In this document: piece by piece, positions 12,249 to 38,481 of the stretch
Layout: every line of letters starts with the position of its first letter
Position numbering within the stretch: the stretch's first letter is position 1
Assembly: GCA_002269645.1 (NCBI GenBank)
Contig: NIVC01000073.1
Coordinates: forward strand, 880,460 to 944,459
Origin: Macrostomum lignano
Taxonomy: Eukaryota
DNA: 64,000 nucleotides
Direction of reading: 5' to 3'
Made by a program: the position numbers and the translations under genes
The notes under the pieces: model-generated
What the model saw: only the letters and a program-made list of their open reading frames with translations
The model's database searches: none
Told to the model about the DNA's origin: nothing

Positions 12249-14153
12249 TCAGTCAGCTGTCGGGGGCACACCTCTTGTCAGCGTGCAGTTCAGGTTGCTG
12301 AAGTGACGAGACATGTTCGTACTTCTATAATAGTTGATCAGTCCTTCCATGGTGGGGAACCAGCGCTTCTGGTTGAGGCCCAGTCCGTACTGGCCGTCCT
12401 TTCGGAGTATCTCAATATGTACAACGTCGCCTGAGACATTGAGAGACAGCACTCTGCCCTCATCACTGCTGCCTTTCGGTCGAATTAGAAAGGCGCCGTT
12501 CTCTTTGTACTTGAGCAGCTCGGCCGCTCTATCTCGGTTCGCTGTTCGATGAAAGAAGTCTTCCGAACAAAAATTCGACGGCTGAGAGATGCGCCGTGGC
12601 TGGCAATTCTTTTTGGCTTGGGCCTCGAAGCAGGCCCGGTCAACACGGCAGCCGCAGTTGTTGCACAGGTAGCCCTGCAGTACGGTGCCGTTCATGATAC
12701 CGCCGCAGCCCTGGCATTCCGTGCCAGACGAGAATGTAGTGAGCTTGAACTCGTGCCCGTTCTTATCCCAGCCAGTTGGGAAACAGTCGGCCTTGGCCTT
12801 ATTGAGCAACTCGATCCAATCAGCCGGGTCGGCATCCCGCGGTGACTTGTGCTTCTCGAGCTTCAACCGAGCCCCGGCCTCGAGAGCAATCTCCAGAGTT
12901 GTCGCGTCCTTGCGTTTCACGCCCTGCACCTGATCCATTGGCACGGACATCCAATGGCACAGAGGATCTTTCTTCGTAGCTCTGGACGCTACAAAGAGAT
13001 ACTTGGTTGTGAGAATGCAGTTGCACAGCTCTCTGATCTCCTTGCGCTCCCCCTGGCTGCCCGAGGCCCGGTAGCGAACACGAAACGACGCGTCCGCCTG
13101 CAGCAGCCCGATCTCGGACGGCTGCCTGAGCTCCGCCTTCAGACCAGTAACCTCGGACAGCACCACGATGGTGTCGTCAGTCTGTTGAGCCTCGCTCTGG
13201 TAGACGTCGGCCCTAGTCAGCAGGGACTTCAGGTCGGAGAGAGCCTTGGACACGGATGGCAGAGTTTCTGGAGCCTCCTTTTTAGCGGTCTTTTCTAACC
13301 GGATGAAAAGCTGCTGGTAGTTGGGCAGCTGACGAATTGGAGCGTCGTAAACGTAGTTAAAGGTGTTTGGGTCACAGATAAGCTTCTCAAGCATCTCCAA
13401 CTGGTCGTTCTTCTCAGGAAACCGCTCCAATTCGGCCTTCAATCTAGCATTAGCCGTTGGCAGGTGCGAAAAATACTGAAAATAGATTTCAATTCGAGGC
13501 AGCATGCCGGCGAATACGGAGGAAATGTTCTGGCAGAAGTGCTCGCAACCCTTCGAAGCTAGAGCGGTGAGCTTGCTGTGGAGCTGCTTGTGCAGCAGGT
13601 AGAGCTGGTCAGTGTACCTGAACACAACAGCGACCAGCTCCTCGTCCCATTCGGACAGGATGCCCAGGAGTTCTTTGCGAAATAGTAGCACTTTGAGCAG
13701 CTTCTCAGTGAGCTGCCTCTCGTGATCGCAGATCTCCTGCACAACATTGGCCAGGATTCCGCTGTCTCGCGATTGAGCAGCTTTCGATCTCCGCTGGAGC
13801 AGGCCGTGCAAAACCCACACGACGCGATCGGGGTCGTTCATCTCTACGAGGTCGTCCACTTCGAACAGCTCCTTCTCGCTGGTGCCGAATGCGGTCCAGC
13901 ATTGACGCAGGAAGTTGCGAATATTGCGCCTGGCCAACAGCTGCGAGTTGCGCATGTAGTAGGACGTGTAGGCCACCTCGGCCAGGTCCTGTCCTTGGCT
14001 CAGCTCTGCCAGCACGCTGCAAAGAATCTCGCCATCGCTTAGCAACTCGCACAGCTCCGAAGAGGTGGCGCACCCGTCTGCAAAGTCTGGCGACGATAGC
14101 AGAGCTCGGATATGCTCGATGCACTCCTTGACTCGCCGGCTTTCAACTGACAT
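12249..14153 (-). CDS. Vav-like Rho-family GEF (CH-DH-PH-C1-SH2), intronless coding region, divergent, 634 aa
   Basis: CH: LSDGEILCSVL...SQLLARRNIRNFLRQC...ELFEVDDL. DH: PIRQLPNYQQLFIRLEK. A PH-like segment follows. C1: HEFKLTTFSSGTECQGC...GYLCNNC. SH2: GAFLIR...HIEI...LINYY...NMSRHFSNLNCTL. This domain order is diagnostic of the Vav family. Confidence 0.85.
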   Translation of the reverse strand: MSVESRRVKECIEHIRALLSSPDFADGCATSSELCELLSDGEILCSVLAELSQGQDLAEVAYTSYYMRNSQLLARRNIRNFLRQCWTAFGTSEKELFEVDDLVEMNDPDRVVWVLHGLLQRRSKAAQSRDSGILANVVQEICDHERQLTEKLLKVLLFRKELLGILSEWDEELVAVVFRYTDQLYLLHKQLHSKLTALASKGCEHFCQNISSVFAGMLPRIEIYFQYFSHLPTANARLKAELERFPEKNDQLEMLEKLICDPNTFNYVYDAPIRQLPNYQQLFIRLEKTAKKEAPETLPSVSKALSDLKSLLTRADVYQSEAQQTDDTIVVLSEVTGLKAELRQPSEIGLLQADASFRVRYRASGSQGERKEIRELCNCILTTKYLFVASRATKKDPLCHWMSVPMDQVQGVKRKDATTLEIALEAGARLKLEKHKSPRDADPADWIELLNKAKADCFPTGWDKNGHEFKLTTFSSGTECQGCGGIMNGTVLQGYLCNNCGCRVDRACFEAQAKKNCQPRRISQPSNFCSEDFFHRTANRDRAAELLKYKENGAFLIRPKGSSDEGRVLSLNVSGDVVHIEILRKDGQYGLGLNQKRWFPTMEGLINYYRSTNMSRHFSNLNCTLTRGVPPTAD

Positions 14154-15045
14154 GGCCTCTGGAAGCCGAAGTTAGCGTCAAATTTGGATAAAAAAACAGT
14201 ATTATTTGAGAAGGTTTTGGTAGAAACTTCTCGCTGACACTTTATACAGCAACTTACAGTAAGTCTGCCTCTTCCAACAGTGTACACTCGTTGAAAGCCA
14301 TTGTGCAAAACTATTATATTGTGCTGTACAAAGTTCGCGGCTTTTTATAGTAATTAAACTGTACTGAAAGCAGCTGCAGGATAGAAAAGAATGGATGCAG
14401 GGGCCGGGCGAGACAGGTCGAACTTCGGTTGTCACTTGCTTACCTCCTCATTAGCTTGCGAAGTTCTGCCTTTGACTGTCTGCCAAAAGACTAACTAAAT
14501 TGTTATTTTCTTCTTACTCGTAATACAGGTGCCAGTTGAATAAGCAATGAGCAGACTTCGCCTCAGCCTCTTGGTAGGCGCGATCCTGTCTCCTAGACAG
14601 GTGGGTGCCACATCCAAGAGATAGCAAACTTTCAAAAGCTGTCATTCGTCGAGATTAACCAGCCTGCAATTTTTTACCGGCTATTGTGGAGGGGGACCTC
14701 TGCCCCCCTCTGCGTACGTTACGCTTTTTCTTAAGAGTCAACCGCCCAAAATTATCACTGGGCCACTCTGTCCCTCTCTTAAAATTGAACTTTAGACGAA
14801 CTTCACGAACGGGCACATCATTCACTTAATGTAATACTAATAGTAGAAAAAAGTCACGAGAGCAAAGTAGAGCCAAGTATGAATAGAATTCATATATTTC
14901 TGACAATTTTTCACGGGTGTTAGCAACTAGCAGGACAATCACCAACCAGCAGACAAACGGAAGCTAACGAAGGCCCTGAAGCCGGCGATAACGGCGCAGT
15001 CTCGGACAGCTCACAACTGGCGAGAGGCATTACTGCCCACTCCGC

Positions 15046-22614: not shown

Positions 22615-25600
22615 TCATTCGGTCTCGCAGCAGAACTCGTAGGCGTTGACAAACATTTTAAACCAAGGCGACGCCAGATTATTGTCATCACTACTATTAG
22701 TAGACGCTTGCTGTCCAGCCGGACACTGCCAGGTGAGGAAGCTGCGCTCCGGATGCGGCATCATCGCCAGGTGACGGCCGCAAGGGCTGCAGACGGCCGC
22801 CAAGCCTTTAGGCGAGCCGTTCGGATTGCACGGATACGACTCGGTGGCCTCGCCGGCCTGATCGACGTACACCAGCGGCACCCGGCCAGCCGCCAGCAGG
22901 CTGTCGGCCGAGGCCACCGAGAACCGACCCTCGCCGTGGGCGCTCCACACGCCCAGCCGGCTGTCCGACATGCCGCGAAGCAACGGACAAGAAGTTGGCA
23001 AAACTCGGACAGTCGGATAGCGAGACTCGAAACGGCCGCTCAAGTTCGGCTCCAAGGTCACCGGGGCGCTGGAGTCGCTGCTGCCGCTATCGGAGTCGCC
23101 GTCAAGCCAGCCGATGCGAGCCATGAGCTGGCAGCCGTTGCACACGCCCAGGCTGAAACTGTTGCCACGGCGACGGAGGGCGTCCAGTTCGCGATGAACG
23201 CTGGGATGAAATTGCACCTGCGCGGAGATTAGTGGGAATCTTGCTTTGCATTGGGAATTGAAAGAGACAAGGGGACTTAAAATTGGATGAAGGACATGGG
23301 ATTAAGGACTGATATGGGATATTTCTCCGCTGGGGTTAAGGACTGATATGGGATATTTCTCCGCTGGGATTAAGGACTGATATGGGATTTTTCTCCGCTG
23401 GGATTAAGGACTGATATGGGATATTTCTCCGTTGGGATTAAGGACTGATATGGGATATTTCTCCGCTGGGATTAAGGACTGATATGGGATTTTTCTCCGC
23501 TGGGATTAAGGACTGATATGGGATATTTCTCCGTTGGGATTAAGGACTGATATGGGATATTTCTCCGCTGGGATTAAGGACTGATATGGGATATTTCTCC
23601 GCTGGGATTAAGGACTGATATGGGATTTTTCTCCGCTGGGATTAAGGACCCCTGATATGGGATATTTCTCCGTTGGGATTAAGGGGAGAAACGGGATATT
23701 TCTCCGTTAGGTTCAGCGGGAGATATATTATTGTAGGGTATTTTCCCCGTTGGGATAAAAGGGAAAATAGGGGATACTTCTTCCTTGGGATTTGGGATTC
23801 GACTTTAGCCGTGAGCACATCTCTCACCTGAGCTGCCCAGCCCTTGGCGGAGCCCAGCACGTCGGCATAGCTGAATCCGCCAACAAACGCCACGCCGCGA
23901 CAGTCGGCTAGGCTGACCCCGTCTTCGCCGTCGCCGTCGGCAGCCAGGTCGCCAGTGGTGACGTCCAAGACTCGAAAGCCAGCGGCGTAGAAGGCGGCGG
24001 CCATCTCCCTGTCGCCGTTGGACCCCTCCTCGCGAATGATGGCCACAGTGAAGCGCCGTTCCATAGCCAACAGTCGGTCAACGCTTGGCAACAAGCAGGG
24101 TTCCGTTGCCGTGGCAACGTACTGATTGGCGCCGCCGGCTTCTCTTAGGTAGCGCAGCTCGGACCTGGCGCAGTCCGGCTGGCACTGAGCCAACTCCAGC
24201 TGGTGCGACGGCCGCTCCCAGGCTTCTCGAAGGTCTGCGAGGCTGACTTTGTCCAGCAGCTGCGGTGAAAGTGTCAAATCATCATCATCTGACACTAATT
24301 CAAGCCATCATCTGACACTAATTCAAGCCATCACCTGACACTAATTTAAGCCATCATCTGACACTAATTCAAGCCATTACCTGACACTAATTTAAGCCAT
24401 CACCTGACACTAATTCAAGCCATCATCTGACACTAATTCAAGCCATCATCTGACACTAATTCAAGCCATCATCTGACACTAATTCAAGCCATCATCTGAC
24501 ACTAATTCAAGCCACCATCTGACACTAATTCAACCCATTATCTGACACTAATTAAAGCCACCAACCGACACTTTGAAGTTATTGTCTGACACTCACCACA
24601 CGATCCCCGGCAACGATCCTCAGTTCCCCGGCAACGGTTGCTAGGCCAACAATGCGCACTCCAGTCGATAGTCCGGCGGAGTTCAGCCGATCCAACACCT
24701 GATTGGCTGCCTCATTAGACGCGGCCTGAAGCAGCCAGCCCGGCTCTTCGGACATCAGCCAGGCTGTCGGACAGGCGACACTGTCCGGCACTCGAAGCTC
24801 CAAGCCGCAGCGGCCGCCAGCAGCCAGAGCCATCTCGATAGCCGCCACGGCCAGGCCGCCATCGCTGATGTCGTGCCCGGCAGTCAGCAGCTTCGGCGAA
24901 GTCTCCGACAACAACGATTGGACAGCGGCGAATCCGGCCGCTAGTCGGAGGGCGTCCGGGTTTGGACAGTCCCGGCCGAAGATGTCGCCGCCGCCGGAGC
25001 TGCAACGGGCGAAAGCCGAGCCGCCCAGGCGGCAAGCGTCGGGTAGGTCGCCGAGTGGCACGTGGATCAACGGTCCAGCGTGGGGTTGCAGCACCGGCTG
25101 TAGGGTCAGCGTGATGTCCGGACACACGGCATAGACCGAGACTACAAGCTGTCCGGGACTGCGGATCACCTGCACCAGTTTGAAAAAAAATTCTTTACAT
25201 TTTTTATGCTATTTTACTTGTATTTTACTTGCATTGCTACTAACAGTAGTGTATCTAGAGTAGCTATTTTTGGAAATATTTTCGAGCGTCACACCTGCGT
25301 CTCTCCCGTAGTCTGATTAGTAACGCTGGCGGCCATACTCAGGGAGTCTTTGCCTCCGTCGATGGCCACGCCAAGCTGTTTCATAAAATCCACCGTAGCC
25401 AAGGCCGTAGCAACCAGCTGGCCGCCATCGGCGCCGCGTTTACCTGGCCACATCCAATTAGTGGAGCATTTCACATCGGCCAGACTTGTGACCCGGGCCA
25501 TCGCCAGGTTAGTGAGAGCTTCGCAGACGGCCATACGACCGGCGCGCGACGGGTCTAGCAATCCTTTGATTGGCTGCTCGCCAATAGCGGTGGCGCCGCC

Positions 25601-28600
25601 GACGCGGTCGAAATAGCTCAGAGCGACAACGGCCACGTCGGCTAGAGGCGTGTGCAGCGGCCCGACGCACTGCTGCTGGGCCACAAGGCCGGTGACAGAA
25701 CGATCCACCTTGTTAGTTAGGAACCGCTTGCTGCCGACGTCTGGGCAGGAGAGAACTGAGAGCAGGCTGGCTAGGAGATATGATTGGCTGCACTCCAGCG
25801 GCGAAGGCGGTTGCTGGGGGAGAAGGGGAATATAATAGTAACTACGGTGCGATTAGGAATCCGTTGTTATTATTTATAGTCTGAATAGGCCAGATTAGCA
25901 ATCCGTTTCTATTATTTATAGTCTAGATAGGCTAGATAAGCAATCCATTCTCAATGCCTATTAACCCATAGACAGGCTAGATTAGCAATCCATTCTCAAT
26001 GCCTATTAACCCATAGACAGGCTAGATTAGCAATCCATTCTCAATGCCTATTAACCCATAGACAGGCTAGATTAGCAATCCATTCTCAATGCCTTTTAAC
26101 CCATAGACAGGCTAGATTAGCAATCCATTCTCAATGCCTATTAACCCATAGACAGGCTAGATAAGCAATCCATTCTCAATGCCTATTAACCCATAGACAG
26201 GCTAGACTAGCAATCCATTCTCAATGCCTATTAACCCATAGACAGGCTAGACTAGCAATCCATTCTCAATGCCTATTAACCCATAGACAGGCTAGATTAG
26301 CAATCCATTCTCAATGCCTATTAACCCATAGACAGGCTAGACTAGCAATCCATTCTCAATGCCTATTAACCCATAGACAGGCTAGATTAGCAATCCATTC
26401 TTAATGCCTATTAACCCATAGACAGGCTAGACTAGCAATCCATTCTCAATGCCTATTAACCCATAGACAGGCTAGACTAGCAATCCATTCTCAATGCCTA
26501 TTAACCCATAGACAGGCTAGACTAGCAATCCATTCTCAATGCCTATTAACCCATAGACAGGCTAGACTAGCAATCCATTCTCAATGCCTATTAACCCATA
26601 GACAGGCTAGACTAGCAATCCATTCTCAATGCCTATTAACCCATAGACAGGCTAGATTAGCAATCCATTCTCAATATCTATTAACCCATAGACAGGCTAG
26701 ATTAGCAATCCATTCTCACACACCTCATCCGTCAGTCGATACGGCTTCAAGTTGCTGCAATCCAACAGGAACTCCTTCTGTGGCACCCCGCTGAGCACGG
26801 CGTCCAATGGCAGACAGACGGGAGTTGCCTCCGGATCTCGCACTCTGGCCCGCTTTGCTCCATCTCCACCGTCGCTAACAACGCTGTCGCCGCGGCCGAA
26901 GCTGTACAGCGTGACCACACCAGTGTCGCGTACAACTCCAACATCGATGGCAGGACACCGTTCTCTGGCTCCAATCCGCCTGAGCCGCTCCATCAAGTCT
27001 GGCGGTACGAGGCAAGCGTCAGACTCTTGATACTCGGCGCCCCAGAGTTCGAGAGGGCTCAGTGTTGGATCGCCTAATTGAAATTTGTCGGCGTAGATAT
27101 CGGCGCCAAGCGGCTCGCAGATCTCTTTTAATACGTTGGCGTTGCCGCCAGCGCCCTGAGCAAAGAATGAAAAATTGCGCTATTAGTTTTATTTCAGGTA
27201 TTTTAGCATTGAAAGCTACATTCTTAGGGGCGTTTTAACATTATCTCAATCAGGGGGTATTTCAGCTTCAAAAGCAGATATCAATCAGGGGGTATTTCAG
27301 CTTCAAAAGCAGATCTCAATCAGGGGGTATTTCAGCTTCAAAAGCAGATCTCAATCAGGAAGTATTTCAGCTTCAATAGCAGATCTCAATCAGGGGGTAT
27401 TTCAGCTTCAAAAGCAGATCTCAATCAGGAAGTATTTCAGCTTCAATAGCAGATCTCAATCAGGGGGTATTTCAGCTTCATTAGCAGATCTCAATCAGGG
27501 GGTATTTCAGCTTCAATAGCAGATCTCAATTAGGGGGTATTTCAGCTTCAATAGCAGATCTCAATCAGGGGGTATTTCAGCTTCAATAGCAGATCTCAAT
27601 CAGGGGGTATTTCAGCTTCAATAGCAGATCTCAATCAGGGGGTATTTCCGCTTTAATAGCAGATCTCAATCAGGGGGTATTTCAGCTTCAATAGCAGATC
27701 TCAATCAGGGGGTATTTCAGCTTCAATAGCAGATCTCAATCAGGGGGTATTTCAGCTTCAAAAGCAGATCTCAATCAGGAAGTATTTCAGCTTCAATAGC
27801 AGATCTCAATCAGGGGGTATTTCAGCTTCATTAGCAGATCTCAATCAGGGGGTATTTCAGCTTCAATAGCAGATCTCAATCAGGGGGTATTTCAGCTTCA
27901 ATAGCAGATCTCAATCAGGGGGTATTTCAGCTTCATTAGCAGATCTCAATCAGGGGGTATTTCAGCTTCAATAGCAGATCTCAATCAGGGGGTATTTCAG
28001 CTTCATTAGCAGATCTCAATCAGGGGGTATTTCAGCTTCAATAGCAGATCTCAATCAGGGGGTATTTCAGCTTCAATAGCAGATCTCAATCAGGGGGTAT
28101 TTCAGCTTCATTAGCAGATCTCAATCAGGGGGTATTTCAGCTTCAATAGCAGATCTCAATCAGGGGGTATTTCAGCTTCAATAGCAGATCTCAATCAGGG
28201 GGTATTTCAGCTTCAAAAGCAGATCTCAATCAGGAAGTATTTCAGCTTCAATAGCAGATCTCAATCAGGGGGTATTTCAGCTTCATTAGCAGATCTCAAT
28301 CAGGGGGTATTTCAGCTTCATTAGCAGATCTCAATCAGGGGGTATTTCAGCTTCAATAGCAGATCTCAATCAGGGGGTATTTCAGCTTCAAAAGCAGATC
28401 TCAATCAGGAAGTATTTCAGCTTCAATAGCAGATCTCAATCAGGGGGTATTTCAGCTTCATTAGCAGATCTCAATCAGGGGGTATTTCAGCTTTAATAGC
28501 AGATCTCAATCAGGGGGTATTTCCGCTTTAATAGCAGATCTCAATCAGGGGGTATTTCAGCTTCAATAGCAGATCTCAATCAGGGGGTATTTCAGCTTCA

Positions 28601-31600
28601 ATAGCAGATCTCAATCAGGGGGTATTTCAGCTTCAATAGCAGATCTCAATCAGGGGGTATTTCCGCTTTAATAGCAGATCTCAATCAGGGGGTATTTCAG
28701 CTTCAATAGCAGATCTCAATTAGGGGGTATTTCAGCTTCAAAAGCAGATCTCAATCAGGGGGTATTTCAGCTTCAATAGCAGATCTCAATTAGGGGGTAT
28801 TTCAGCTTCAAAAGCAGATCTCAATCAGGGGGTATTTCAGCTTCAACAACAGGATTTACCTGATCATGCACGCTCTGTATGGGGTTGCAGTCCGCCCCCA
28901 GCTCGGCGCAGGCCCGCACCAACCGGTTGAGTTTGCCGCCCATCTGCGCGTCGCCGCGCTGCACGGCGTTAAAGTTCAACTCGTCAGCGGCCGCCCCGCC
29001 TTCGCCTTGGACGCCGACTGAGCTGGCGGCGCCGCCACCGACGCCGATCCGATAGGCCGGCCCGCCCAGCTTGACTACCAGATCGCCTGGCTTGGCCGGT
29101 CGCTTAGCAACCAATCCGTCGTCAAGGGCGCCGATACCGCCGCTGAACATGACCGGTTTGACCCATTCCCGACGCTCGCCGCCTTGAAAGACGTCGCCGA
29201 ATGCGCGGCAGAAGCCGGCAATCAGCGGCTCGCCAAATTTGTTGCCGTAGTCGCTGGCGCCGTCCGAGGCTTCGAGTAGAACTCGGCGAGGCCGAGCCAT
29301 GCCGGCTGCGTAGCCTTCGACAGCGAATCGTTCGTCTAAGTCGCCGACGCAGTAGCCCGCTGTGCCCGCGATGGTGTACCTGAAGCCATGTGTTGAAGCT
29401 CGAGGCTGGCCCAGCAACTGAGGATCTGGGAGGCTGGCCCAGAAACTGAGGATCTGGGAGGCTGGCCCAGCAACTGAGGATCTGGGAGGCTGGCCCAGCA
29501 ACTGAGGATCAGGGAGGCTGGCCCAGCAACTGACACTCTGGGAGGCTGGCCCAGCAACTGATACTCTGGGAGGCTGGCCCAGCAACTGAGGATCTGGGAG
29601 GCTGGCACAGCAACTGAGGATCTGGGAGGCTGGCCCAGCAACTGAGGATCTGGGAGGCTGGCCCAGCAACTGACACTCTGGGAGGCTGGCCCAGCAACTG
29701 AGACTCTGGGAGGCTGGCCCAGCAACTGAGGATCTGGGAGGCTGGCCCAGCAACTGAGGATCTGGGAGGCTGGCCCAGCAACTGAGGATCTGGGAGGCTG
29801 GCCCAGCAACTGAGACTCTGGGAGGCTGGCCCAGCAACTGACACTCTGGGAGGCTGGCCCAGCAACTGATACTCTGGGAGGCTGGCCTAGCAACTGACAC
29901 TCTGGGAGGCTGGCCCAGCAACTGACACTCTGGGAGGCTGGCCCAGCAACTGAGCATCTGGGGGGGGGGCTGGTGGCCAAGCAACTGAGCATCTTGGGGG
30001 GGGGCTGGTGGCCAAGCAACTGAGCATCTGGGGGGGGGGGCTGGTGGCCAAGCAACTGAGCATCTGGGGGGGGGGGGCTGGTGGCCAAGCAACTGAGCAT
30101 CTGGGGGGGGGCTGGTGGCCAAGCAACTGAGCATCTTGGGGGGGGGCTGGTGGCCAAGCAACTGAGCATCTTGGGGGGGGGCTGGTGGCCAAGCAACTGA
30201 GCATCTGGGGGGGGGGGGGGGGCTGGTGGCCAAGCAACTGAGCATCTTGGGGGGGCTGGTGGCCAAGCAACTGAGCATCTGGGGGGGGGGGCTGGTGGCC
30301 AAGCAACTGAGCATCTGGGGGGGGGGGGGCTGGTGGCCAAGCAACTGAGCATCTGGGGGGGGGGGCTGGTGGCCAAGCAACTGAGCATCTGGGGGGGGGG
30401 GCTGGTGGCCAAGCAAACAGCTGAGCCATTAACCAGCTTCATAAAGCAGAAATCTTTCATACCCGCCCCGACCAGTCGCGTGCACGTCCCGAATTCTACC
30501 GCCGGCGCCAGTTGCCGCGCCCTCAAACGGCGCCACAGCGGTTGGGAAATTGTGCGTCTCGGCGGTGAGGATCACGTGACGCAGCTGGGGATCTGGCAAC
30601 AGGCGGAGCTCGGAGCCGCGAGCGGGGTCAACGGGGCACAAGACGGGCACACGGAGGCCGCGGATGGCGCTGCTGTTGTCGCACATGGCCAGCACGCTGT
30701 TGGACGCCGATTCGGCCAGAGTTGATGAGACCAGCGCCATCAGATGGGGATATTTGTTGCCTAGCAACGGCTCGCGAGTCGATGCGTTGAGTAGGCGGCC
30801 TGGTTTGAGATTTTTTAAGATCTATAGTAGAACTTGAAAAAAACATCCAATTTTGGGATTTTTAGGTATCTGGAACTTTAGATATCCCAGTTTGGATTTT
30901 TAGGAATCTGGAACTTAGGATATCCCGTTTTAAGATTTTAAGGATCTGGAACTTGCGATATCCGGCTTTGGGATTTTTAGGGATCTGGAACTTGTGATAT
31001 CCCGCTTTGGGATTTTTAGGTATCTTGAACTTGAAATATCCCACTTGGGATTTTTAAGGATCTGGAACTTGGGATATCCCGTTTTAAGATTTTAAGGATC
31101 TGGAACTTGAGGTACCCCATTTTGGGATTTTTAGGGATCTGGAACTTGGGATATCCCGTTTTAAGATTTTAAGGATCTGGAACTTGCGATATCCGGCTTT
31201 GGGATTTTTAGGGATCTGGAACTTGTGATATCCCGCTTTGGGATTTTTAGGTATCTTGAACTTGAAATATCCCATTTGGGATATCTAAAGATCACACGTT
31301 TTAAAACAGACTGCGAACCTTTAAAGAACCAATGCCTGCAGTGCTCGCTATTAGACTGGGCCAAATCGAAGCATTCAACGCTAGTAGGATTTCTGCCAAT
31401 AGTTTCAGCAAACAATTTCGTATAATAGTCCAAATCCCAGTCGTCCATAGACAGGCCCATAGTAGCGTTGACTTCGGCCAGGGCTTCCCTGCCTCGGCCG
31501 CAGACGTCAACTTCGAAGACCGGCTGAGGCGGACAGCGCAGCAACTCGGATCGGTAGGAGTCGGCAGTGAGCGGCGCCGGGTACACAGACTGGGTCATGC

Positions 31601-32099
31601 GATCGCACAGTTTGTCGCTGTGTACAAATTCAGTCAATCTACGATGCACAACGCTATCTGGCCAGTTGCTAAGCAACCTATTATAAACAAACCGATAAAC
31701 TATGGAGCTTTCAACGCGTTGAACAGGCGGAGCCAAACCGATGCCGGAGCAAATCGCTACGCAGTTAGTTGAGAAAGCGGTGGTGACGCTTAGCCGAGGC
31801 CCGACCTCGGCTCTATAGGCACCGTGGAATGCTGCTTCAACGCTTGAAGATTCCGATGAAGCTGACAGCTGGGAACTGGTTTTATCTGTGCCCAGCAGGT
31901 AATGCAGCTGACACTGCTGCTCTGGGCTAAGCTGCTGGCTGCACTGGACATAGAAGCAGCGCTCTGTGGCTACAGACTCAACTGGTGGACAGGCATCGCG
32001 GCAGCTGGCTAGCAGGTTAGACAGCTGCTCAGCTGTGTGACAGTCCGACAGGTAGAGCCGATAGAAGGCCTGCAGTGTCCAGGTGCGAACAAAATAAGC
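22615..32099 (-). CDS. PFAS: Phosphoribosylformylglycinamidine synthase (FGAM synthase, large PurL type); exons 32099-31319, 30799-30463, 29379-28860, 27155-26724, 25813-25295, 25169-24597, 24259-23828, 23217-22615
   Basis: All junctions are GT-AG and phase-compatible; the 4197-nt total gives 1398 aa plus stop. Hallmark motifs: [117 protein letters not shown]. No in-frame ATG in the first exon. Confidence 0.96.
23300..23700. repeat. PFAS intronic array, 34-bp unit TTAAGGACTGATATGGGATATTTCTCCGCTGGGA
   Basis: About 11 units within intron 23218-23827. Confidence 0.93.
24280..24560. repeat. PFAS intronic array, 23-bp unit CCATCATCTGACACTAATTCAAG
   Basis: Fills most of intron 24260-24596. Confidence 0.93.
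25960..26718. repeat. PFAS intronic array, 45-bp unit AGATTAGCAATCCATTCTCAATGCCTATTAACCCATAGACAGGCT
   Basis: About 16 near-identical units ending a few bp from the donor at 26723. Confidence 0.95.
27245..28845. repeat. PFAS intronic array, 35-bp unit GCAGATCTCAATCAGGGGGTATTTCAGCTTCAATA
   Basis: About 45 units filling intron 27156-28859. Confidence 0.95.
29402..29955. repeat. PFAS intronic array, 28-bp unit GGGAGGCTGGCCCAGCAACTGAGGATCT
   Basis: About 19 units. Confidence 0.93.
29945..30420. repeat. PFAS intronic array with variable poly-G tract, GCAACTGAGCATCT(G)nCTGGTGGCCAA
   Basis: About 13 units with G-runs of roughly 8-14; shares GCAACTGAG with the adjacent 28-bp array. Confidence 0.93.
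30855..31285. repeat. PFAS intronic degenerate ~32-bp array (GGATTTTTAGGGATCTGGAACTT...GATATCCC) with an internal duplication
   Basis: ORF translations 30862-31044 and 31084-31275 are nearly identical, showing block duplication. Confidence 0.88.
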
Positions 32100-32104
32100 C
32101 TGCA

Positions 32105-33760
32105 AAATGTACTTCCCAAATCTTAAATACCCCTAGAAATGTACTTTCCAAAGCTTAAATACCCATAGAAATGTACTTTCCAAAGCTAAAATACCCCTAG
32201 AAATGTACTTCCCAAATCTTAAATACCCCTAGAAATGTATTTCCCAAATATTAAATACCCCTAGAAATGTACTTTCCAAATCTTAAATACCCCTAGAAAT
32301 GTACTTCCCAAAGCTAAAATACCCCTAGAAATGTACTTTCCAAAGCTTAAATACCCCTAGAAATGTACTTCCCTTCCCAAAGCTTAAATACCCCTAGAAA
32401 TGTACTTTCCAAAGCTAAAATACCCCTAGAAATGTACTTTCCAAATCTTAAATACCCCTAGAAATGTACTTCCCAAATCTTAAATACCCCTAGAAATGTA
32501 CTTCCCAAAGCTAAAATACCCCTAGAAATGTACTTTCCAAAGCTTAAATACCCCTAGAAATGTACTTCCCTTCCCAAAGCTTAAATACCCCTAGAAATGT
32601 ACTTTCCAAAGCTAAAATACCGCTAGAAATGTACTTTCCAAAGCTTAAATACCCCTAGAAATGTACTTCCCTTCCCAAAGCTAAAATACCCCTAGAAATG
32701 GATTTCCCAAATCTTAAATACCCCTAGAAATGTACTTCCTAAAGCTTAAATACCCCTAGAAATGTACTTCCCAAAGCTAAAATACCCCTGGGAATGTACC
32801 CGTCAGAGCTAAAGTACCCCTTCGAATGAGCCCCCCAACCTCTAGGAATGTACCCCTCAGAGCTAAAATAGCCCTAGCAGTGGCGTAGCTAGGATTTTGA
32901 AAAGGGGGGGGGATAACTTTCAGGGACAAAATTATAGACTAATAAAATATTTTCTTCGTATTTTTTGCTGAAATAATGCATTTTAAAAGTATCAAAACCA
33001 TGTTTTTAGGCTAAAAATACTTTACTTTGGTAAAATCAGAATAAAGTCTGTCCTGACTAGATCCGTTTAGGAACTAGGGATTCGCGGAAATATCATTTAA
33101 AACATTTTATTAGTAATTTCCGAGTGAAATAGGCCAATTTTTGGCAATTTTGCAAGTCTAAGCCTCAGAAGTCTAAGCCGCTTTATTCGCATTTTTTCAA
33201 AAAACCTTATTTTCGTTTCCTATAAATCATCAAAATGGGGGGATATATCCCCGTATCTCCCCCCTAGCTACGCTACTGAGCCCTAGGAATGTATCCTTCA
33301 GAGCTAAAATACCCTAGGAATGTACCCCTCAGAGCTAAAATACCCTAAGAATGTAACCATTGAAGCTAAAATACTTATAGAAATGTATCCTTCAGAGCTA
33401 AAATACCCAAGGAATGTACCCCTCGGAGCTAAAATACCCAAGGAATGTACTCCTCGGAGCTAAAATACCCTAGGAATGTACCCCTCGGAGCTAAAATACC
33501 CTAGGAATGTACCCCTCGGAGTTAAAATACCCTAGGAATGTACCCCTCGGAGCTAAAATACCCTAGGAATGTACCCCTCGGAGCTAAAATACCCTAGGAA
33601 TGTATCCCTCGGAGCTAAATACCCTAGGAATGTACCCCTCGGAGCTAAAATACCCTAGGAATGTACGTATCTCTGAGGTTAAATACCCTAGGAATGTATC
33701 TCTCAGAGCTAAAATACCCCTAGGAAGGTACCCCTGAGCTAAAATACCCAAAGAAATGTA
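32105..33760. repeat. 31-32-bp array (AAATACCCCTAGAAATGTACTTCCCAAATCTT grading to AAAATACCCTAGGAATGTACCCCTCGGAGCT), split by a MITE
   Basis: Starts in the PFAS first-exon acceptor region and is interrupted at 32878-33278. Confidence 0.93.
32878..33278. mobile_element. hAT-type MITE, 401 bp
   Basis: TIRs CAGTGGCGTAGCTAGG / CCTAGCTACGCTACTG (16 bp, 1 mismatch); perfect 8-bp TSD AGCCCTAG at 32870-32877 and 33279-33286; no ORF. An 8-bp TSD with CAG termini is typical of hAT. Confidence 0.9.
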
Positions 33761-34325
33761 CCTGAACCGCGAGCGTCAGAATTCCTTGGTAATACCTAGT
33801 TAAGATTCATTTTATAAGATTTTATTTAATATACATACCTATCGGATGTTATCATAAATGTCTACTGAAAGAAGCACAAAAAATAATAGAGAAAACGGAC
33901 ACAGTGTTATTTTAGATTAAAGAAAGATTTTATTTATTTATTAAGCATTCTACGAGTATACACCAGATTAAAAGTCGTAACAAAGACTAGATTGTAAACA
34001 ATTGTATGGGAATTGTTAACAACATGCTACCAATAGTTAGTGGCATGCTACTAACTATAGTTACAACCGGGACTCGGACTCATTAACTCAGAAATGAGAT
34101 CACAATTCATAGACAGACAATATAAGCAACAGAAGACCTTCTACAGAATACAGAGTTGATTAGATTATGCAGCGTTAAAATTTGAAAATACTTGAAATAA
34201 TTGACAGCATGATTAGTCACTATATTACACAACTAAGCATATCTCATATCAACAATGACAGCCTAAGCCAACTATGACGTAGGATTATCACAGTTATAAA
34301 GTGCAAGTCAAATAGTCAGGGGGCG

Positions 34326-34465: not shown

Positions 34466-34484
34466 TTTAAAGGGATGTGGGATG

Positions 34485-35750
34485 TACCGTATCATAGGGA
34501 TCCGGGATTTGGGATCTACTATCATAGGGATCCGGGATTTGGGATCTCCACTCATAGGGATCCGGGATTTGGGATCTCCACTCATAGGGATCTAGGATTT
34601 GGGATCTACTATCATAGGGATCTGGGATTTGGGATTTCCTATCATAGGGATCTGGGATATTCTATCATAGGGACCTAGGATTTGGGATTTCCTATCATAG
34701 GGACCTGGGATTTGGGATTTCCTATCATAGGGATCTAAGATATCCTATCATAGGATCTAGGATTTGGGATCTCCACTAATAGGGATCGAGGATTTGGGAT
34801 CTACTATCATAGGGATCTGGGATTTGGGATTTCCTATCATAGGGATCTGGGATATTCTATCATAGGGATCTAGGATTTGGGATTTCCTATCATAGGGACC
34901 TGGGATTTGGGATTTCCTATCATAGGGATCTGGGATATCCTATCATAGGATCTAGGATTTGGGATTTCCTATCATAGGGATCTGGGATTTGGGATCTACT
35001 ATCATAGGGATCTGGAATTTGGGATTTCCTATCATAGGGATCTGCGATATTCTATCATAGGGATCTAGGATTAGGGATTTCCTATCATAGGGACCTGGGA
35101 TTTGGGATTTCCTATCATAGGGATCTGGGATATCCTATCATAGGGATCCGGGATTTGGGATTTCCTATCATAGGGATCCGGGATTTGGGATCTCCTATCA
35201 TAGGGATCCGGGATTTGGGATCTCCTATCATAGAGATCTGGGATTTGGGATCTCCTATCATAGGGATCCGGGATTTGGGATCTCCTATCATAGGGATCTG
35301 GGATATCCTATCATAGGAATCTAGGATTTGGGATTTCCTATCATAGGGATCCGGGATTTGGGATCTCCTATCATAGGGATCCGGGATTTGGGATCTCCTA
35401 TCATAGAGATCTGGGATTTGGGACTTCCTATCATAGGGATCCGGGATTTGAAATCTCCTATCAAAGGGATCCGGGATTTGGGATTTCCTATCATAGGGAT
35501 CTAGGATTTGGGATCGCCTATCATAGGGATCTGGGATTTGGGATCTCCTATCATAGGGATCTGGGATTTGGGATCTCCTATCATAGGGATCTGGGATTTG
35601 GGATCGCCTATCATAGGGATCCGGGATTTGGGATCTCTTATCATAGGGATCTGGGATCTCCTATCATAGGGATCTAGGATTTGGGATCGCCTATCATAGG
35701 GATCCGGGATTTGGGATCTCCTATCATAGGGATCCGGGATTTAGGATCCT
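34485..35750. repeat. Intergenic array, 30-bp unit CTATCATAGGGATCCGGGATTTGGGATCTC with 23-bp variants
   Basis: Read directly; lies between the SOCS-box gene stop and PFAS. Confidence 0.95.
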
Positions 35751-35814: not shown

Positions 35815-38339
35815 TTAGCTAGGAGAAACTGACTGCAGCCTTGGCAACCTATCCAATATCTGGCAGAGCTCCCCGTGACTAAGGTAAACAATGGACTCGC
35901 GCAGCATAGGCGGCAGATTAGTTAAAGTTGCTACGCGTTTTTGAAAATGAACGCCGCCAATGCAACGGCGAACAGAATTCCTGGCTAGCAAGTAGAGCGG
36001 CAGTGGCTGCACAAACAGTTGGCCGACTTTGCTCACCCGATCGTAGAACACTCTTCGCTGTCGGACGAACAGCGCCTTCTCGGCGTCGTTGTGAAATTTT
36101 CGACCGTGTAAAAATGAGGCCACGTGAGAGAAATCGTTTAAAAAATCGTCCATGGTGATGTTCATGTCCGTGAGGTGCTTCACCTGTGTACAAATAAGGG
36201 CAGTGTGTTAGTTGTTTAATGGCTTTATTTTATTTTTTATTTACTAACGCAATGTTTTTATGTCAATATTAAACCTGTATAGCTAAGGTCTTTGTTGTAG
36301 GATACTGGACCTGCATAACTAAGGTCTTTGTTGTGGGATACTGGATCTGCATAACTAAGGTCTTTGATGTGGGATATTAAACCTGCATAACTGAGGTTTT
36401 TGTTATGGGACATTGGACCTACAAGTACATGTAAGCTACCAAAAAGTAGGTCTTTGTAGTGGATACTGAACCAAATGAAACATTCACCTGCGCGGGAGTT
36501 CCGCAAAATGTCAGAAACAGATTTAGAAAAGCGTCCTCATAGCCAATGACATCGCAGGCGGTCATAATGTCCACCAGCAGCCGTATTAGACAGAGCGAGA
36601 ACTCCCGCTGTTCCGGGCGAATCTTTGGACAGCCAACGCAGGTGTCATGCAGATGAAGCCCATTGCGCAATAGCGGCTCAAGCATCTGTAGTCGAAGCTT
36701 GAAATGCGATTTCCAATCAACCTGGTGCTGCAATAGGCAATTAACATTGTTGCCAATGCGAACTAGTTCGGCTAACTCGTACTCCATTCGGTCCAGCACG
36801 ATCTTCCGCCCGAATACCATGCGGGCGCCGATGTCGAACCAGAATGCTAACAGAGGGAACCGGCAGTCCCTGCGTATTGGAGTGGCGAGTTAAAGACTGC
36901 GTTTACCGTCGCAAATTATTCGGTAATCTGACTTTCTAATCCTAGGCATGTACACTACACTCTCTGTGGCTTGGGGGTTGGCACTCGGGGCTGCGAATCG
37001 CACGACAATCCACCAGCCAATTTTCGTGAGCAAGTCCCGAAAAATGTGTATCCGGGATACGGGTGAATGGCCGGATCAGACAGGAGACCCGGGGGTGAAT
37101 GGCCGGATCAGACAGGAGATCCGGGGGGGTGAATGGCCGGATCAGACAGGAGACCCGGGGGTGAATGGCCGGATCAGACAGGAGACCCGGGGGTGAATGG
37201 CCGGATCAGACAGGAGAACCGTGTGAATGGCCGGATCAGACAGGAGACCCGGGGGTGAATGGCCGGCTCAGACAGGAGACCCCGGGGGTGAATGGCCGGA
37301 TCAGACAGGAGACCCGTGTGAATGGCCGGATCAGACAGGAGACCCGGGGGTGAATGGCCGGCTCAGACAGGAGACCCGTGTGAATGGCCGGATCAGACAT
37401 GAGACCCGGGGGTGAATGGCCGGCTCAGACAGGAGACCCGGGGGTGAATGGCCGGCTCAGACAGGAGACCCGTGTGAATGGCCGGATCAGACATGAGACC
37501 CGGGGGTGAATGGCCGGCTCAGACAGGAGACCCGGGGGTGAATGGCCGGATCAGACAGGAGACCCGGAGGGGGGGAGAATGGCCAGATCAGACAGGAGAC
37601 CCGGGCGTGAATGGCCGGATCAGACAGGAGACCCGGGGGTGAATGGCCGGATCAGACAGGAGACCCGGAGGGGGGGGGGGAGAATGGCCAGATCAGACAG
37701 GAGACCCGGGCGTGAATGGCCGGATCAGACAGGAGACCCGGGGGTGAATGGCCGGATCAGACAGGAGACCCGGGGGTGAATGGCCGGATCAGACAGGAGA
37801 CCCGGGGGTGAATGGCCGGATCAGACAGGAGACCCGGGGGTGAATGGCCGGATCAGACAGGAGACCCGGGGGTGAATGGCCGGATCAGACAGGAGACCCA
37901 GGGTTGAATGGCGATCAGACAGAAGACCGGGGGGTGAATGGCCGGGTCAGACAGGAGACCCGTGTGAATGGCCGAACACACAAAAGACACACCTATGCAG
38001 AGCATAATCTTCAGCTTCGTCTAATCGCCTGTCAACTCGTTCCACGTGATGCGGATTAAGACCGGCCGCCACCAGCTGTCTCAAGACGTCAAAGCTGTTC
38101 ACCTCCAGAGCGTAGGCCAGGGGACTAATACATCTAGGCTTGTACATTGGCGCCATTATTGATCGATTATTTTTAATAGGCGAATACCAGCCCCACATGA
38201 TCTCTTCATTCTGGTCATTGTCTTTCAATACGCGTCTAACCAGTTGAGTTAGCTGGTTAATCTCTTTGCTATCAATCAGTTGCCTGATTTGCTTGGTGAG
38301 CTCCTCGACTTGCTGTTGTTGTTGTCCGGATTGGGCCTC
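35815..38339 (-). CDS. SOCS-box protein with an ankyrin-like repeat (ASB-like, unassigned); exons 38339-37993, 36869-36488, 36183-35815
   Basis: Phase-compatible GT-AG junctions (CATAG|GTGTGT to gcag|G GAC; CAG|GTGAAT to acag|GTG). C-terminal PLPLYLLARNSVRRCIG...LPPMLRESIVY fits a SOCS box; SPLAYALEVNSFDVLRQLVAAGLNP resembles one ankyrin repeat. The 5' end is unresolved. Confidence 0.75.
36280..36440. repeat. Intronic degenerate 36-bp array TAAGGTCTTTGTTGTAGGATACTGGACCTGCATAAC
   Basis: About 4-5 units in intron 36184-36487. Confidence 0.85.
36928..36982 (+). mobile_element. Short fragment of the dispersed modular repeat
   Basis: CTGACTTTCTAATC matches ~15395; TAGGCATGTACAC..CTGTGGCTTGGGGGTTGG matches 15148-15183. 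Confidence 0.5.
37062..37975. repeat. Intronic array, ~32-bp unit GTGAATGGCCGGATCAGACAGGAGACCCGGGG
   Basis: About 28 units in intron 36870-37992. Confidence 0.95.
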
Positions 38340-38481
38340 CTGAAATTGAAATATTAATTAGAAATATTAATTGGGCTAATGGCACACAATAGAAACTCTG
38401 GACCGGTATTAAATTAGTATTATTACATTACTGTTATTATATTCTCGACCATAAATATTATCCATATGTAATCAAGTTTTG

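Follow-up and report, generated by a model that had tools for sequence, protein, structure and literature searches.

Introduction

The spliced leaders of flatworms end in AUG, which can provide the initiator codon of the open reading frame (ORF) to which they are joined, and some mRNAs of Schistosoma mansoni depend on it (Cheng et al. 2006, as cited in PMC9851317); the leader AUG has also been acknowledged as an initiator for Macrostomum (PMC10468722). Here we consider PFAS, the gene for the large PFAS / PurL enzyme (FGAR amidotransferase), on a stretch of 64,000 nucleotides (nt) of the genome of Macrostomum lignano, a free-living flatworm and hidden polyploid (GenBank assembly GCA_002269645.1, contig NIVC01000073.1, positions 880,460 to 944,459). 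This whole stretch is referred to below as the window, and positions are given in its coordinates. The gene lacks a usable start codon in the genome; its AUG is most likely supplied by the trans-spliced leader.

M. lignano carries a single spliced leader of 35 nt (CGGTCTCTTACTGCGAAGACTCAATTTATTGCATG, 3' end ...TTGCATG) and its trans-splice acceptors are enriched in the motif [T/C]TNCAG (PMC8629364). The leader is found on 30-39% of the genes, with a strong enrichment for those conserved with human (PMC8629364, PMC5730564). A sequence-only reading of the window had stated that flatworm leaders end in AUG and had suggested that PFAS may obtain its Met by trans-splicing; the first statement holds for the species concerned, and the second is supported by the motif and phase of the acceptors, by gene models that lack Met, by purifying selection and by a neighbouring gene.

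PFAS resembles the known flatworm ORFs initiated at a leader AUG in that the leader ends in AUG, an acceptor lies in phase at the first codon, at the 5' edge of a conserved ORF, the predicted junction is in frame and the recipient has no usable AUG of its own. It differs from them in belonging to a free-living basal flatworm, in the recipient being PFAS, in being known from sequence alone, and in carrying two tandem in-frame acceptors 30 nt apart. The acceptor motif, the conservation of the gene and an upstream neighbour that itself looks trans-spliced are shared with the genes described in studies of trans-splicing and operons in M. lignano (Wudarski 2017, PMC5730564; Ustyantsev and Berezikov 2021, PMC8629364), in which the leader AUG is not discussed as a start codon. 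Domain order and full-length similarity are common to M. lignano PFAS and the metazoan large PFAS / PurL but, unlike the latter, the M. lignano gene is without a genomic start codon and is present in three near-identical genomic copies.

Gene Structure and the Missing Start Codon

Spliced mapping of the GenBank protein PAA91816.1 onto the window placed PFAS on the minus strand in eight exons, extending from 32069 to 22615, and every intron is canonical (GT...CAG). The main features are as follows, a slash here and below marking a splice junction.

31319-32069, minus strand: PFAS exon 1, 751 nt, donor AAAG/gttcgc, encoding the FGAR-AT_N and linker domains (spliced mapping, Pfam)
30799-30463, 29379-28860, 27155-26724, 25813-25295, 25169-24597, 24259-23828 and 23217-22615, minus strand: PFAS exons 2-8, the last including the stop codon
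32133-32135, minus strand: in-frame TAG bounding the PFAS frame upstream, with no ATG from here to codon 158
31596-31598, minus strand: first in-frame genomic ATG of PFAS, codon 158 from 32069 and codon 168 from 32099

The product shows 48-50% identity to metazoan PFAS across 97-99% of its length, and the domain order is complete, with FGAR-AT_N (residues 38-167 by Pfam), the linker (residues 198-247), PurM-like/AIRS_C twice and GATase_5, as found in PFAS / large PurL. On the minus strand the 5' edge of the gene reads ...GTACATTTTGCAG/GCT TAT TTT GTT CGC ACC TGG ACA CTG CAG/GCC TTC TAT CGG CTC TAC CTG TCG GAC TGT..., and the first in-frame ATG follows only after the sequence EVGPRLSV, close to where the N-terminal domain ends, so that a start at Met158 would delete almost the entire FGAR-AT_N domain. 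The sequence-only reading had described a gene that begins at a phase-0 acceptor without an initiator ATG, and it had given the exon starts 32099 and 32069 exactly; its estimate of about 170 codons to the first in-frame Met, past VGPRL, agrees with the count of 168 or 158 codons given above.

Nearly every PFAS intron is filled by a minisatellite of its own, with periods of 23-45 nt, 12-46 copies and 82-97% identity. Examples are:

23297-23706, 24283-24572, 25924-26718, 27243-28846, 29402-30416 and 30852-31282: intronic PFAS minisatellites

Two Tandem In-Frame Acceptors

32070-32075, minus strand: CTGCAG, the favoured trans-splice acceptor, exon start at 32069 (GCC TTC TAT CGG...), phase 0
32100-32105, minus strand: TTGCAG, the second in-frame acceptor, exon start at 32099 (GCT TAT TTT...), phase 0, adjoining the last unit of a minisatellite

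Both sites, CTGCAG/G (32075-32069) and TTGCAG/G (32105-32099), fit the motif [T/C]TNCAG and both are in phase 0 to the PFAS frame, so that a leader AUG would be in frame with either one. Over the 64 kb of the window, both strands included, the sequence YTNCAGG occurs at only 34 sites, whereas shuffles would lead one to expect 84; two of the 34 stand 30 nt apart at the point where homology to PFAS begins. All three genomic copies of the gene are identical in having both acceptors.

We envisage that the PFAS pre-mRNA would be trans-spliced to the single 35-nt leader, most likely at CTGCAG/ with the exon starting at 32069, and alternatively or additionally at TTGCAG/ with the exon starting at 32099, and that the minisatellite and MITE-like DNA upstream (MITE, miniature inverted-repeat transposable element) would be discarded as an outron. 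The last three bases of the leader, AUG, would then immediately precede the first genomic codon, in its frame, and act as initiator. For 32069 the predicted mRNA junction is ...TTGCATG/GCCTTCTAT, translated as M-A-F-Y-R-L-Y-L-S, and the product would be a 1389-residue PFAS starting with the leader Met; for 32099 it is ...TTGCATG/GCT TAT TTT..., with the N-terminus (M)AYFVR and ten more residues. The predicted junctions may also be given as ...TTATTGCATG/GCCTTCTATCGG or ...TTATTGCATG/GCTTATTTTGTT, and the sequence across the junction would be TTATTGCATGGCCTTCTATCGGCTC for 32069 and TTATTGCATGGCTTATTTTGTTCGC for 32099. We infer both that trans-splicing really happens at PFAS and that ribosomes start at the leader AUG.

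The two possible N-termini were aligned by MAFFT with 12 animal orthologues. M-A-F-Y-R-L-Y pairs with M-x-V-L-R/H-F-Y, and M-A-F-Y-R-L-Y-L-S lies opposite M-P-V-L-R-F-Y-R-T in Lingula, M-V-V-L-H-F-Y-R-S in Xenopus and M-A-I-L-R-F-Y-Q-S in a tick. In most of the 12 orthologues the Met stands in the column of the leader-derived Met of the 32069 junction, and the ten extra residues encoded from the 32099 site face gaps in almost every orthologue. Within the 30 nt between the acceptors the sole difference among the paralogues is non-synonymous, TAT to AAT. A plausible candidate for a branch point preceding the 32069 acceptor is cTTAt, whose A (32095) lies 25 nt before the AG, and TTTTGTTC comes after it; a branch point and then TTTTGTTC before the AG is the normal layout of a 3' splice site.

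Given the matching Met column, the gapped extra residues, the non-synonymous change, the branch-point layout and the GenBank gene starts that adjoin 32069 (see below), we favour 32069 with moderate confidence as the junction, 32099 being a minor or alternative site. Since one UniRef model from an older assembly, A0A1I8IYT1 (P0245; AYFVRTW...), starts exactly at 32099, that site may also be used. Both acceptors of the sequence-only reading are thus real and in phase 0, but the likelier junction is the one that it had treated as the alternative. It had also correctly seen that homology to the extreme N-terminus of PFAS starts here, but its pairing of LQAFYR with human VLHFYV was off; the register in the MAFFT alignment lies three residues further on, with RLY rather than AFY opposite HFY, and the earlier register was dropped. 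It is this corrected register that brings the leader-derived Met to the orthologous Met position.

The acceptors with their next codons, GCAGGCTTATTTTGTTCGC-ACCTG and GCAGGCCTTCTATCGGCTCTACCTG, lie exactly 30 nt apart and are alike, by eye, at about 16 of 25 bases. The acceptor and first codons at 32069-32105 may possibly represent an old in-frame tandem duplication.

Paralogous Copies and the Coding Character of the N-Terminal Region

The three copies of PFAS are carried by scaffolds 73 (L003), 23 (L004) and 660 (L005), the first of which holds the window. Exon 1 of scaffold 73 differs from that of scaffold 23 at 11 positions, ten of them upstream of Met158, and nine of these ten differences are synonymous; all six of its differences to scaffold 660 are synonymous as well. 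Only 24% of the possible single-base changes upstream of Met158 are synonymous, which yields a binomial P of ~2e-5 for nine out of ten. This pattern shows the N-terminal 157 codons to be translated in the PFAS frame, with purifying selection acting, as judged from these substitutions, on the codons that precede the first genomic ATG.

Public Gene Models

All five public models of the three copies, comprising three GenBank proteins and two UniRef models, are without an initial Met. The GenBank proteins PAA91816.1 (this scaffold), PAA93688.1 and PAA78925.1 carry the label 'partial' and have the N-termini RLYLSDC or YRLYLSDC; their coding sequences (CDS) start at position 32060 on scaffold 73 and at the equivalent of 32063 in the other two copies, which places them 9 and 6 nt, respectively, past the 32069 acceptor. 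The GenBank annotation is based on genome-guided transcripts, with ORFs called by TransDecoder and with reads mapped end-to-end (PMC5730564). A 5'-partial ORF would imply a transcript model beginning within 0-2 nt of that point, for with a transcript reaching further upstream the caller would be expected to hit the TAG and pick Met158, and end-to-end mapping would cause leader-bearing reads to be lost at the junction. RNA coverage appears to begin near the 32069 acceptor in all three copies, and the offset of a few bases between the acceptor and the CDS starts is plausibly technical.

A search with the 261-residue exon-1 peptide gave only distant matches (<=45% identity) and no M. lignano or transcript-derived N-terminus, a negative result that constitutes weak evidence. 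The matches were all shorter than 450 residues and M. lignano PFAS was not among them, although it was recovered at 98% identity with the full-length query; given this discrepancy, negatives from short protein queries are to be read with caution.

Alternative Sources of a Start Codon

Several points weigh against initiation at a leader AUG in PFAS. For the gene itself no leader-junction read, 5'RACE (rapid amplification of cDNA ends) product or peptide was obtained, the protein collection searched held no RNA-derived M. lignano PFAS sequence, and the supplementary tables of three studies (Grudniewska 2016, Grudniewska 2018 and Ustyantsev 2021) did not list PFAS; in the last two the gene ids Mlig011100 and Mlig014508 were likewise not found. 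None of the three copies carries at its PFAS acceptors a leader imprint of the kind described below for the neighbouring gene. Moreover, the NCBI CDS starts lie 6-9 nt past the acceptor and not exactly on it, and the NCBI models were probably not cut on a peak of leader reads. Finally, the choice of acceptor stays between 32069 and 32099, and from the sequence alone a very short cis-spliced exon may be present.

The spacer upstream of PFAS, where such an exon would have to lie, contains the following features.

32105-32821: minisatellite with a 32-nt unit, about 21 copies, the putative outron directly upstream of the acceptors
32878-33278: MITE-like element of about 400 bp, bounded by 16-nt terminal inverted repeats (32878-32893 and 33263-33278; 94% complementary)
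33281-33762: second upstream minisatellite array
33839-33855, minus strand: ATG with donor, ATGATAACATCCGATAG/GTATGT, 17 nt, phase 2
34472-35748 and 37061-37974: further intergenic minisatellites

The minisatellite and the MITE that the sequence-only reading had placed upstream correspond to the first two of these, the minisatellite with a period of 32 nt as listed; for the second, an element with terminal inverted repeats is certainly present and the MITE label is only plausible.

An unannotated cis-spliced 5' exon that supplies the ATG would encode only Met and a few residues and would end in phase 0; with the leader Met of the 32069 junction already on the orthologous Met column, it could encode little beyond Met. 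The 3.7 kb between 35815 and the acceptors were scanned for every ATG followed by a phase-0 GT without an intervening stop. This yielded 21 candidates, most of them inside minisatellite units, and none has the GT[G/A]AG donor that is typical of M. lignano (PMC8629364). The ATG with donor at 33855-33839 had already been described as out of frame by the sequence-only reading, and its phase of 2 bears this out. Four nt beyond its donor is a weak phase-0 donor (33855-33835, ATG ATA ACA TCC GAT AGG TAT/GTATAT) which, together with the annotated 5' ends lying off the exact acceptor and with the room that the sequence leaves for a micro-exon, speaks for a cis-spliced exon. However, scaffolds 23 and 660 lack the motif at 33855, their homology to scaffold 73 being interrupted precisely at this ATG, and their PFAS ORFs are intact and under selection; five independent models of the three copies are also without such an exon. 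We consider a cis-spliced source of the ATG unlikely.

The segment of about 90 nt at 33763-33855 (minus strand) that contains this ATG and donor is rich in AT and specific to the scaffold of the window.

Initiation at a non-AUG codon, for example TTG at 32105-32103 or CTG at 32075-32073, on an mRNA that is not trans-spliced seems very improbable. Upstream of 32099 the frame runs for 11 codons without a stop, near-cognate codons among them, but this stretch is made up of the end of a minisatellite unit and the acceptor motifs, the only paralogue change between the acceptors alters the encoded residue, the public models stop short of the stretch except for the one that starts exactly at the 32099 acceptor, and a leader AUG is at hand in M. 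lignano. A protein starting at 31598, the only in-frame genomic ATG within exon 1, or a locus that is a decaying or misassembled copy, can practically be dismissed, and the pseudogene, misassembly and internal-Met alternatives were rejected, given the nine of ten synonymous differences upstream, the loss of FGAR-AT_N that such a start would entail, the alignment of the region with orthologue N-termini from residue 1, the agreement of three copies at both acceptors, and the intact eight-exon ORF with its canonical GT-AG introns.

Neighbouring Genes and a Possible Operon

The gene upstream of PFAS on the same strand has an acceptor of its own.

38339-38345, minus strand: acceptor TTTCAG/G of the upstream gene, whose annotated CDS is 38315-35815 (357 residues)

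Its 5' edge reads aatTTCAG/GAG GCC CAA TCC GGA CAA..., the exon starting at 38339 in phase 0 with no ATG, and an in-frame TAA lies 21 nt upstream. The acceptor region is TTTCAG/GAGG on scaffold 73 (L003:3716-3725), TTTATG/GAGG on scaffold 660 (L005:4559-4568) and TTCATG/GAGG on scaffold 23 (L004:4332-4341), and this is the only site among all the loci compared at which CAG is replaced by ATG. The altered bases in the two copies are those of the 3' end of the spliced leader (...GCATG) and, on scaffold 660, the annotated CDS of the counterpart (365 residues) begins exactly at the first exon base after the ATG. The M. lignano assembly was Pilon-polished with RNA sequencing (RNA-seq) reads as well as genomic reads (PMC5730564), and the (C)ATG is most likely the result of leader-bearing reads overwriting the acceptor during polishing. 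If it is such an artefact, it constitutes an accidental record of an in-frame leader-ATG/GAGGCC junction in the gene next to PFAS. A biological origin, in which these copies lost the acceptor and hard-wired the leader AUG at the junction, for example by RNA-templated conversion, appears quite unlikely; if it were correct, PFAS and its neighbour in the window would represent the 'before' state, in which the start codon can come only from the leader.

Further along the window, signs of the leader are associated with a Vav-like gene. On scaffold 660 an annotated 5' exon of this gene (P0122, MSIPRFSEHLLHE/AMSVES..., L005:21396-21432) ends in ATTTATTGCATG and is joined to cttccag/AGGCCATG, the first exon base being 14158 (window 14158-14160, minus strand). 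This exon most likely stems from leader-bearing reads mis-mapped across a GC-AG pseudo-intron and, if so, the Vav-like gene would be trans-spliced with the leader AUG out of frame (8-nt offset) with its own ATG. Signs of trans-splicing are thus seen in at least two consecutive genes of this strand around PFAS, and probably in a third. ATTTATTGCATG is a 12-nt exact copy of the leader 3' end; each of the three copies has it at a distance of 6.4 kb upstream of the Vav-like gene (window 20592-20581, minus strand). A search of the 64-kb window for the leader sequence revealed no leader RNA gene, and Rfam gave no matches on the whole window. One further ORF was recorded; its spacing to PFAS agrees with NIVC01000073.1, a scaffold with which the window shows base-for-base identity across the aligned region:

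12249-14153, minus strand: single-exon ORF of 634 residues, encoded exactly on two GCA_002269645.1 scaffolds, cluster mate BOX15_Mlig030523g2

From the stop of the upstream gene at 35815 to the PFAS acceptor at 32070 the distance is 3745 nt. About 2.9 kb of this spacer is repeat, consisting of three minisatellite arrays (~2.5 kb) and the 0.4-kb MITE-like element, and the remainder is ~0.85 kb. Because this falls below the repeat-adjusted distance of 1 kb used as the operon criterion for M. lignano genes (PMC8629364), PFAS may be the downstream gene of an operon that is resolved by the leader.

Implications

A leader-supplied AUG at PFAS is a further example of a mechanism known since 2006 and will not surprise the specialist. 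It mainly explains the 'partial' label that GenBank gives to M. lignano PFAS; other genes whose start codon is provided only by the leader are probably labelled in the same way and would be complete once the leader Met is added. Pipelines that trim the whole leader, including its ATG, will systematically yield models without Met. Users of the Mlig_3_7 assembly (GCA_002269645.1) may also note that a genomic acceptor seems to have been overwritten with the leader ATG when RNA-seq reads were used for polishing. Trans-splicing is reported to be enriched among conserved and stem-cell genes, which a dependence of PFAS on the leader would fit; if this dependence is true, an essential enzyme of de novo purine synthesis, kept in three copies, would be untranslatable in this flatworm without trans-splicing.

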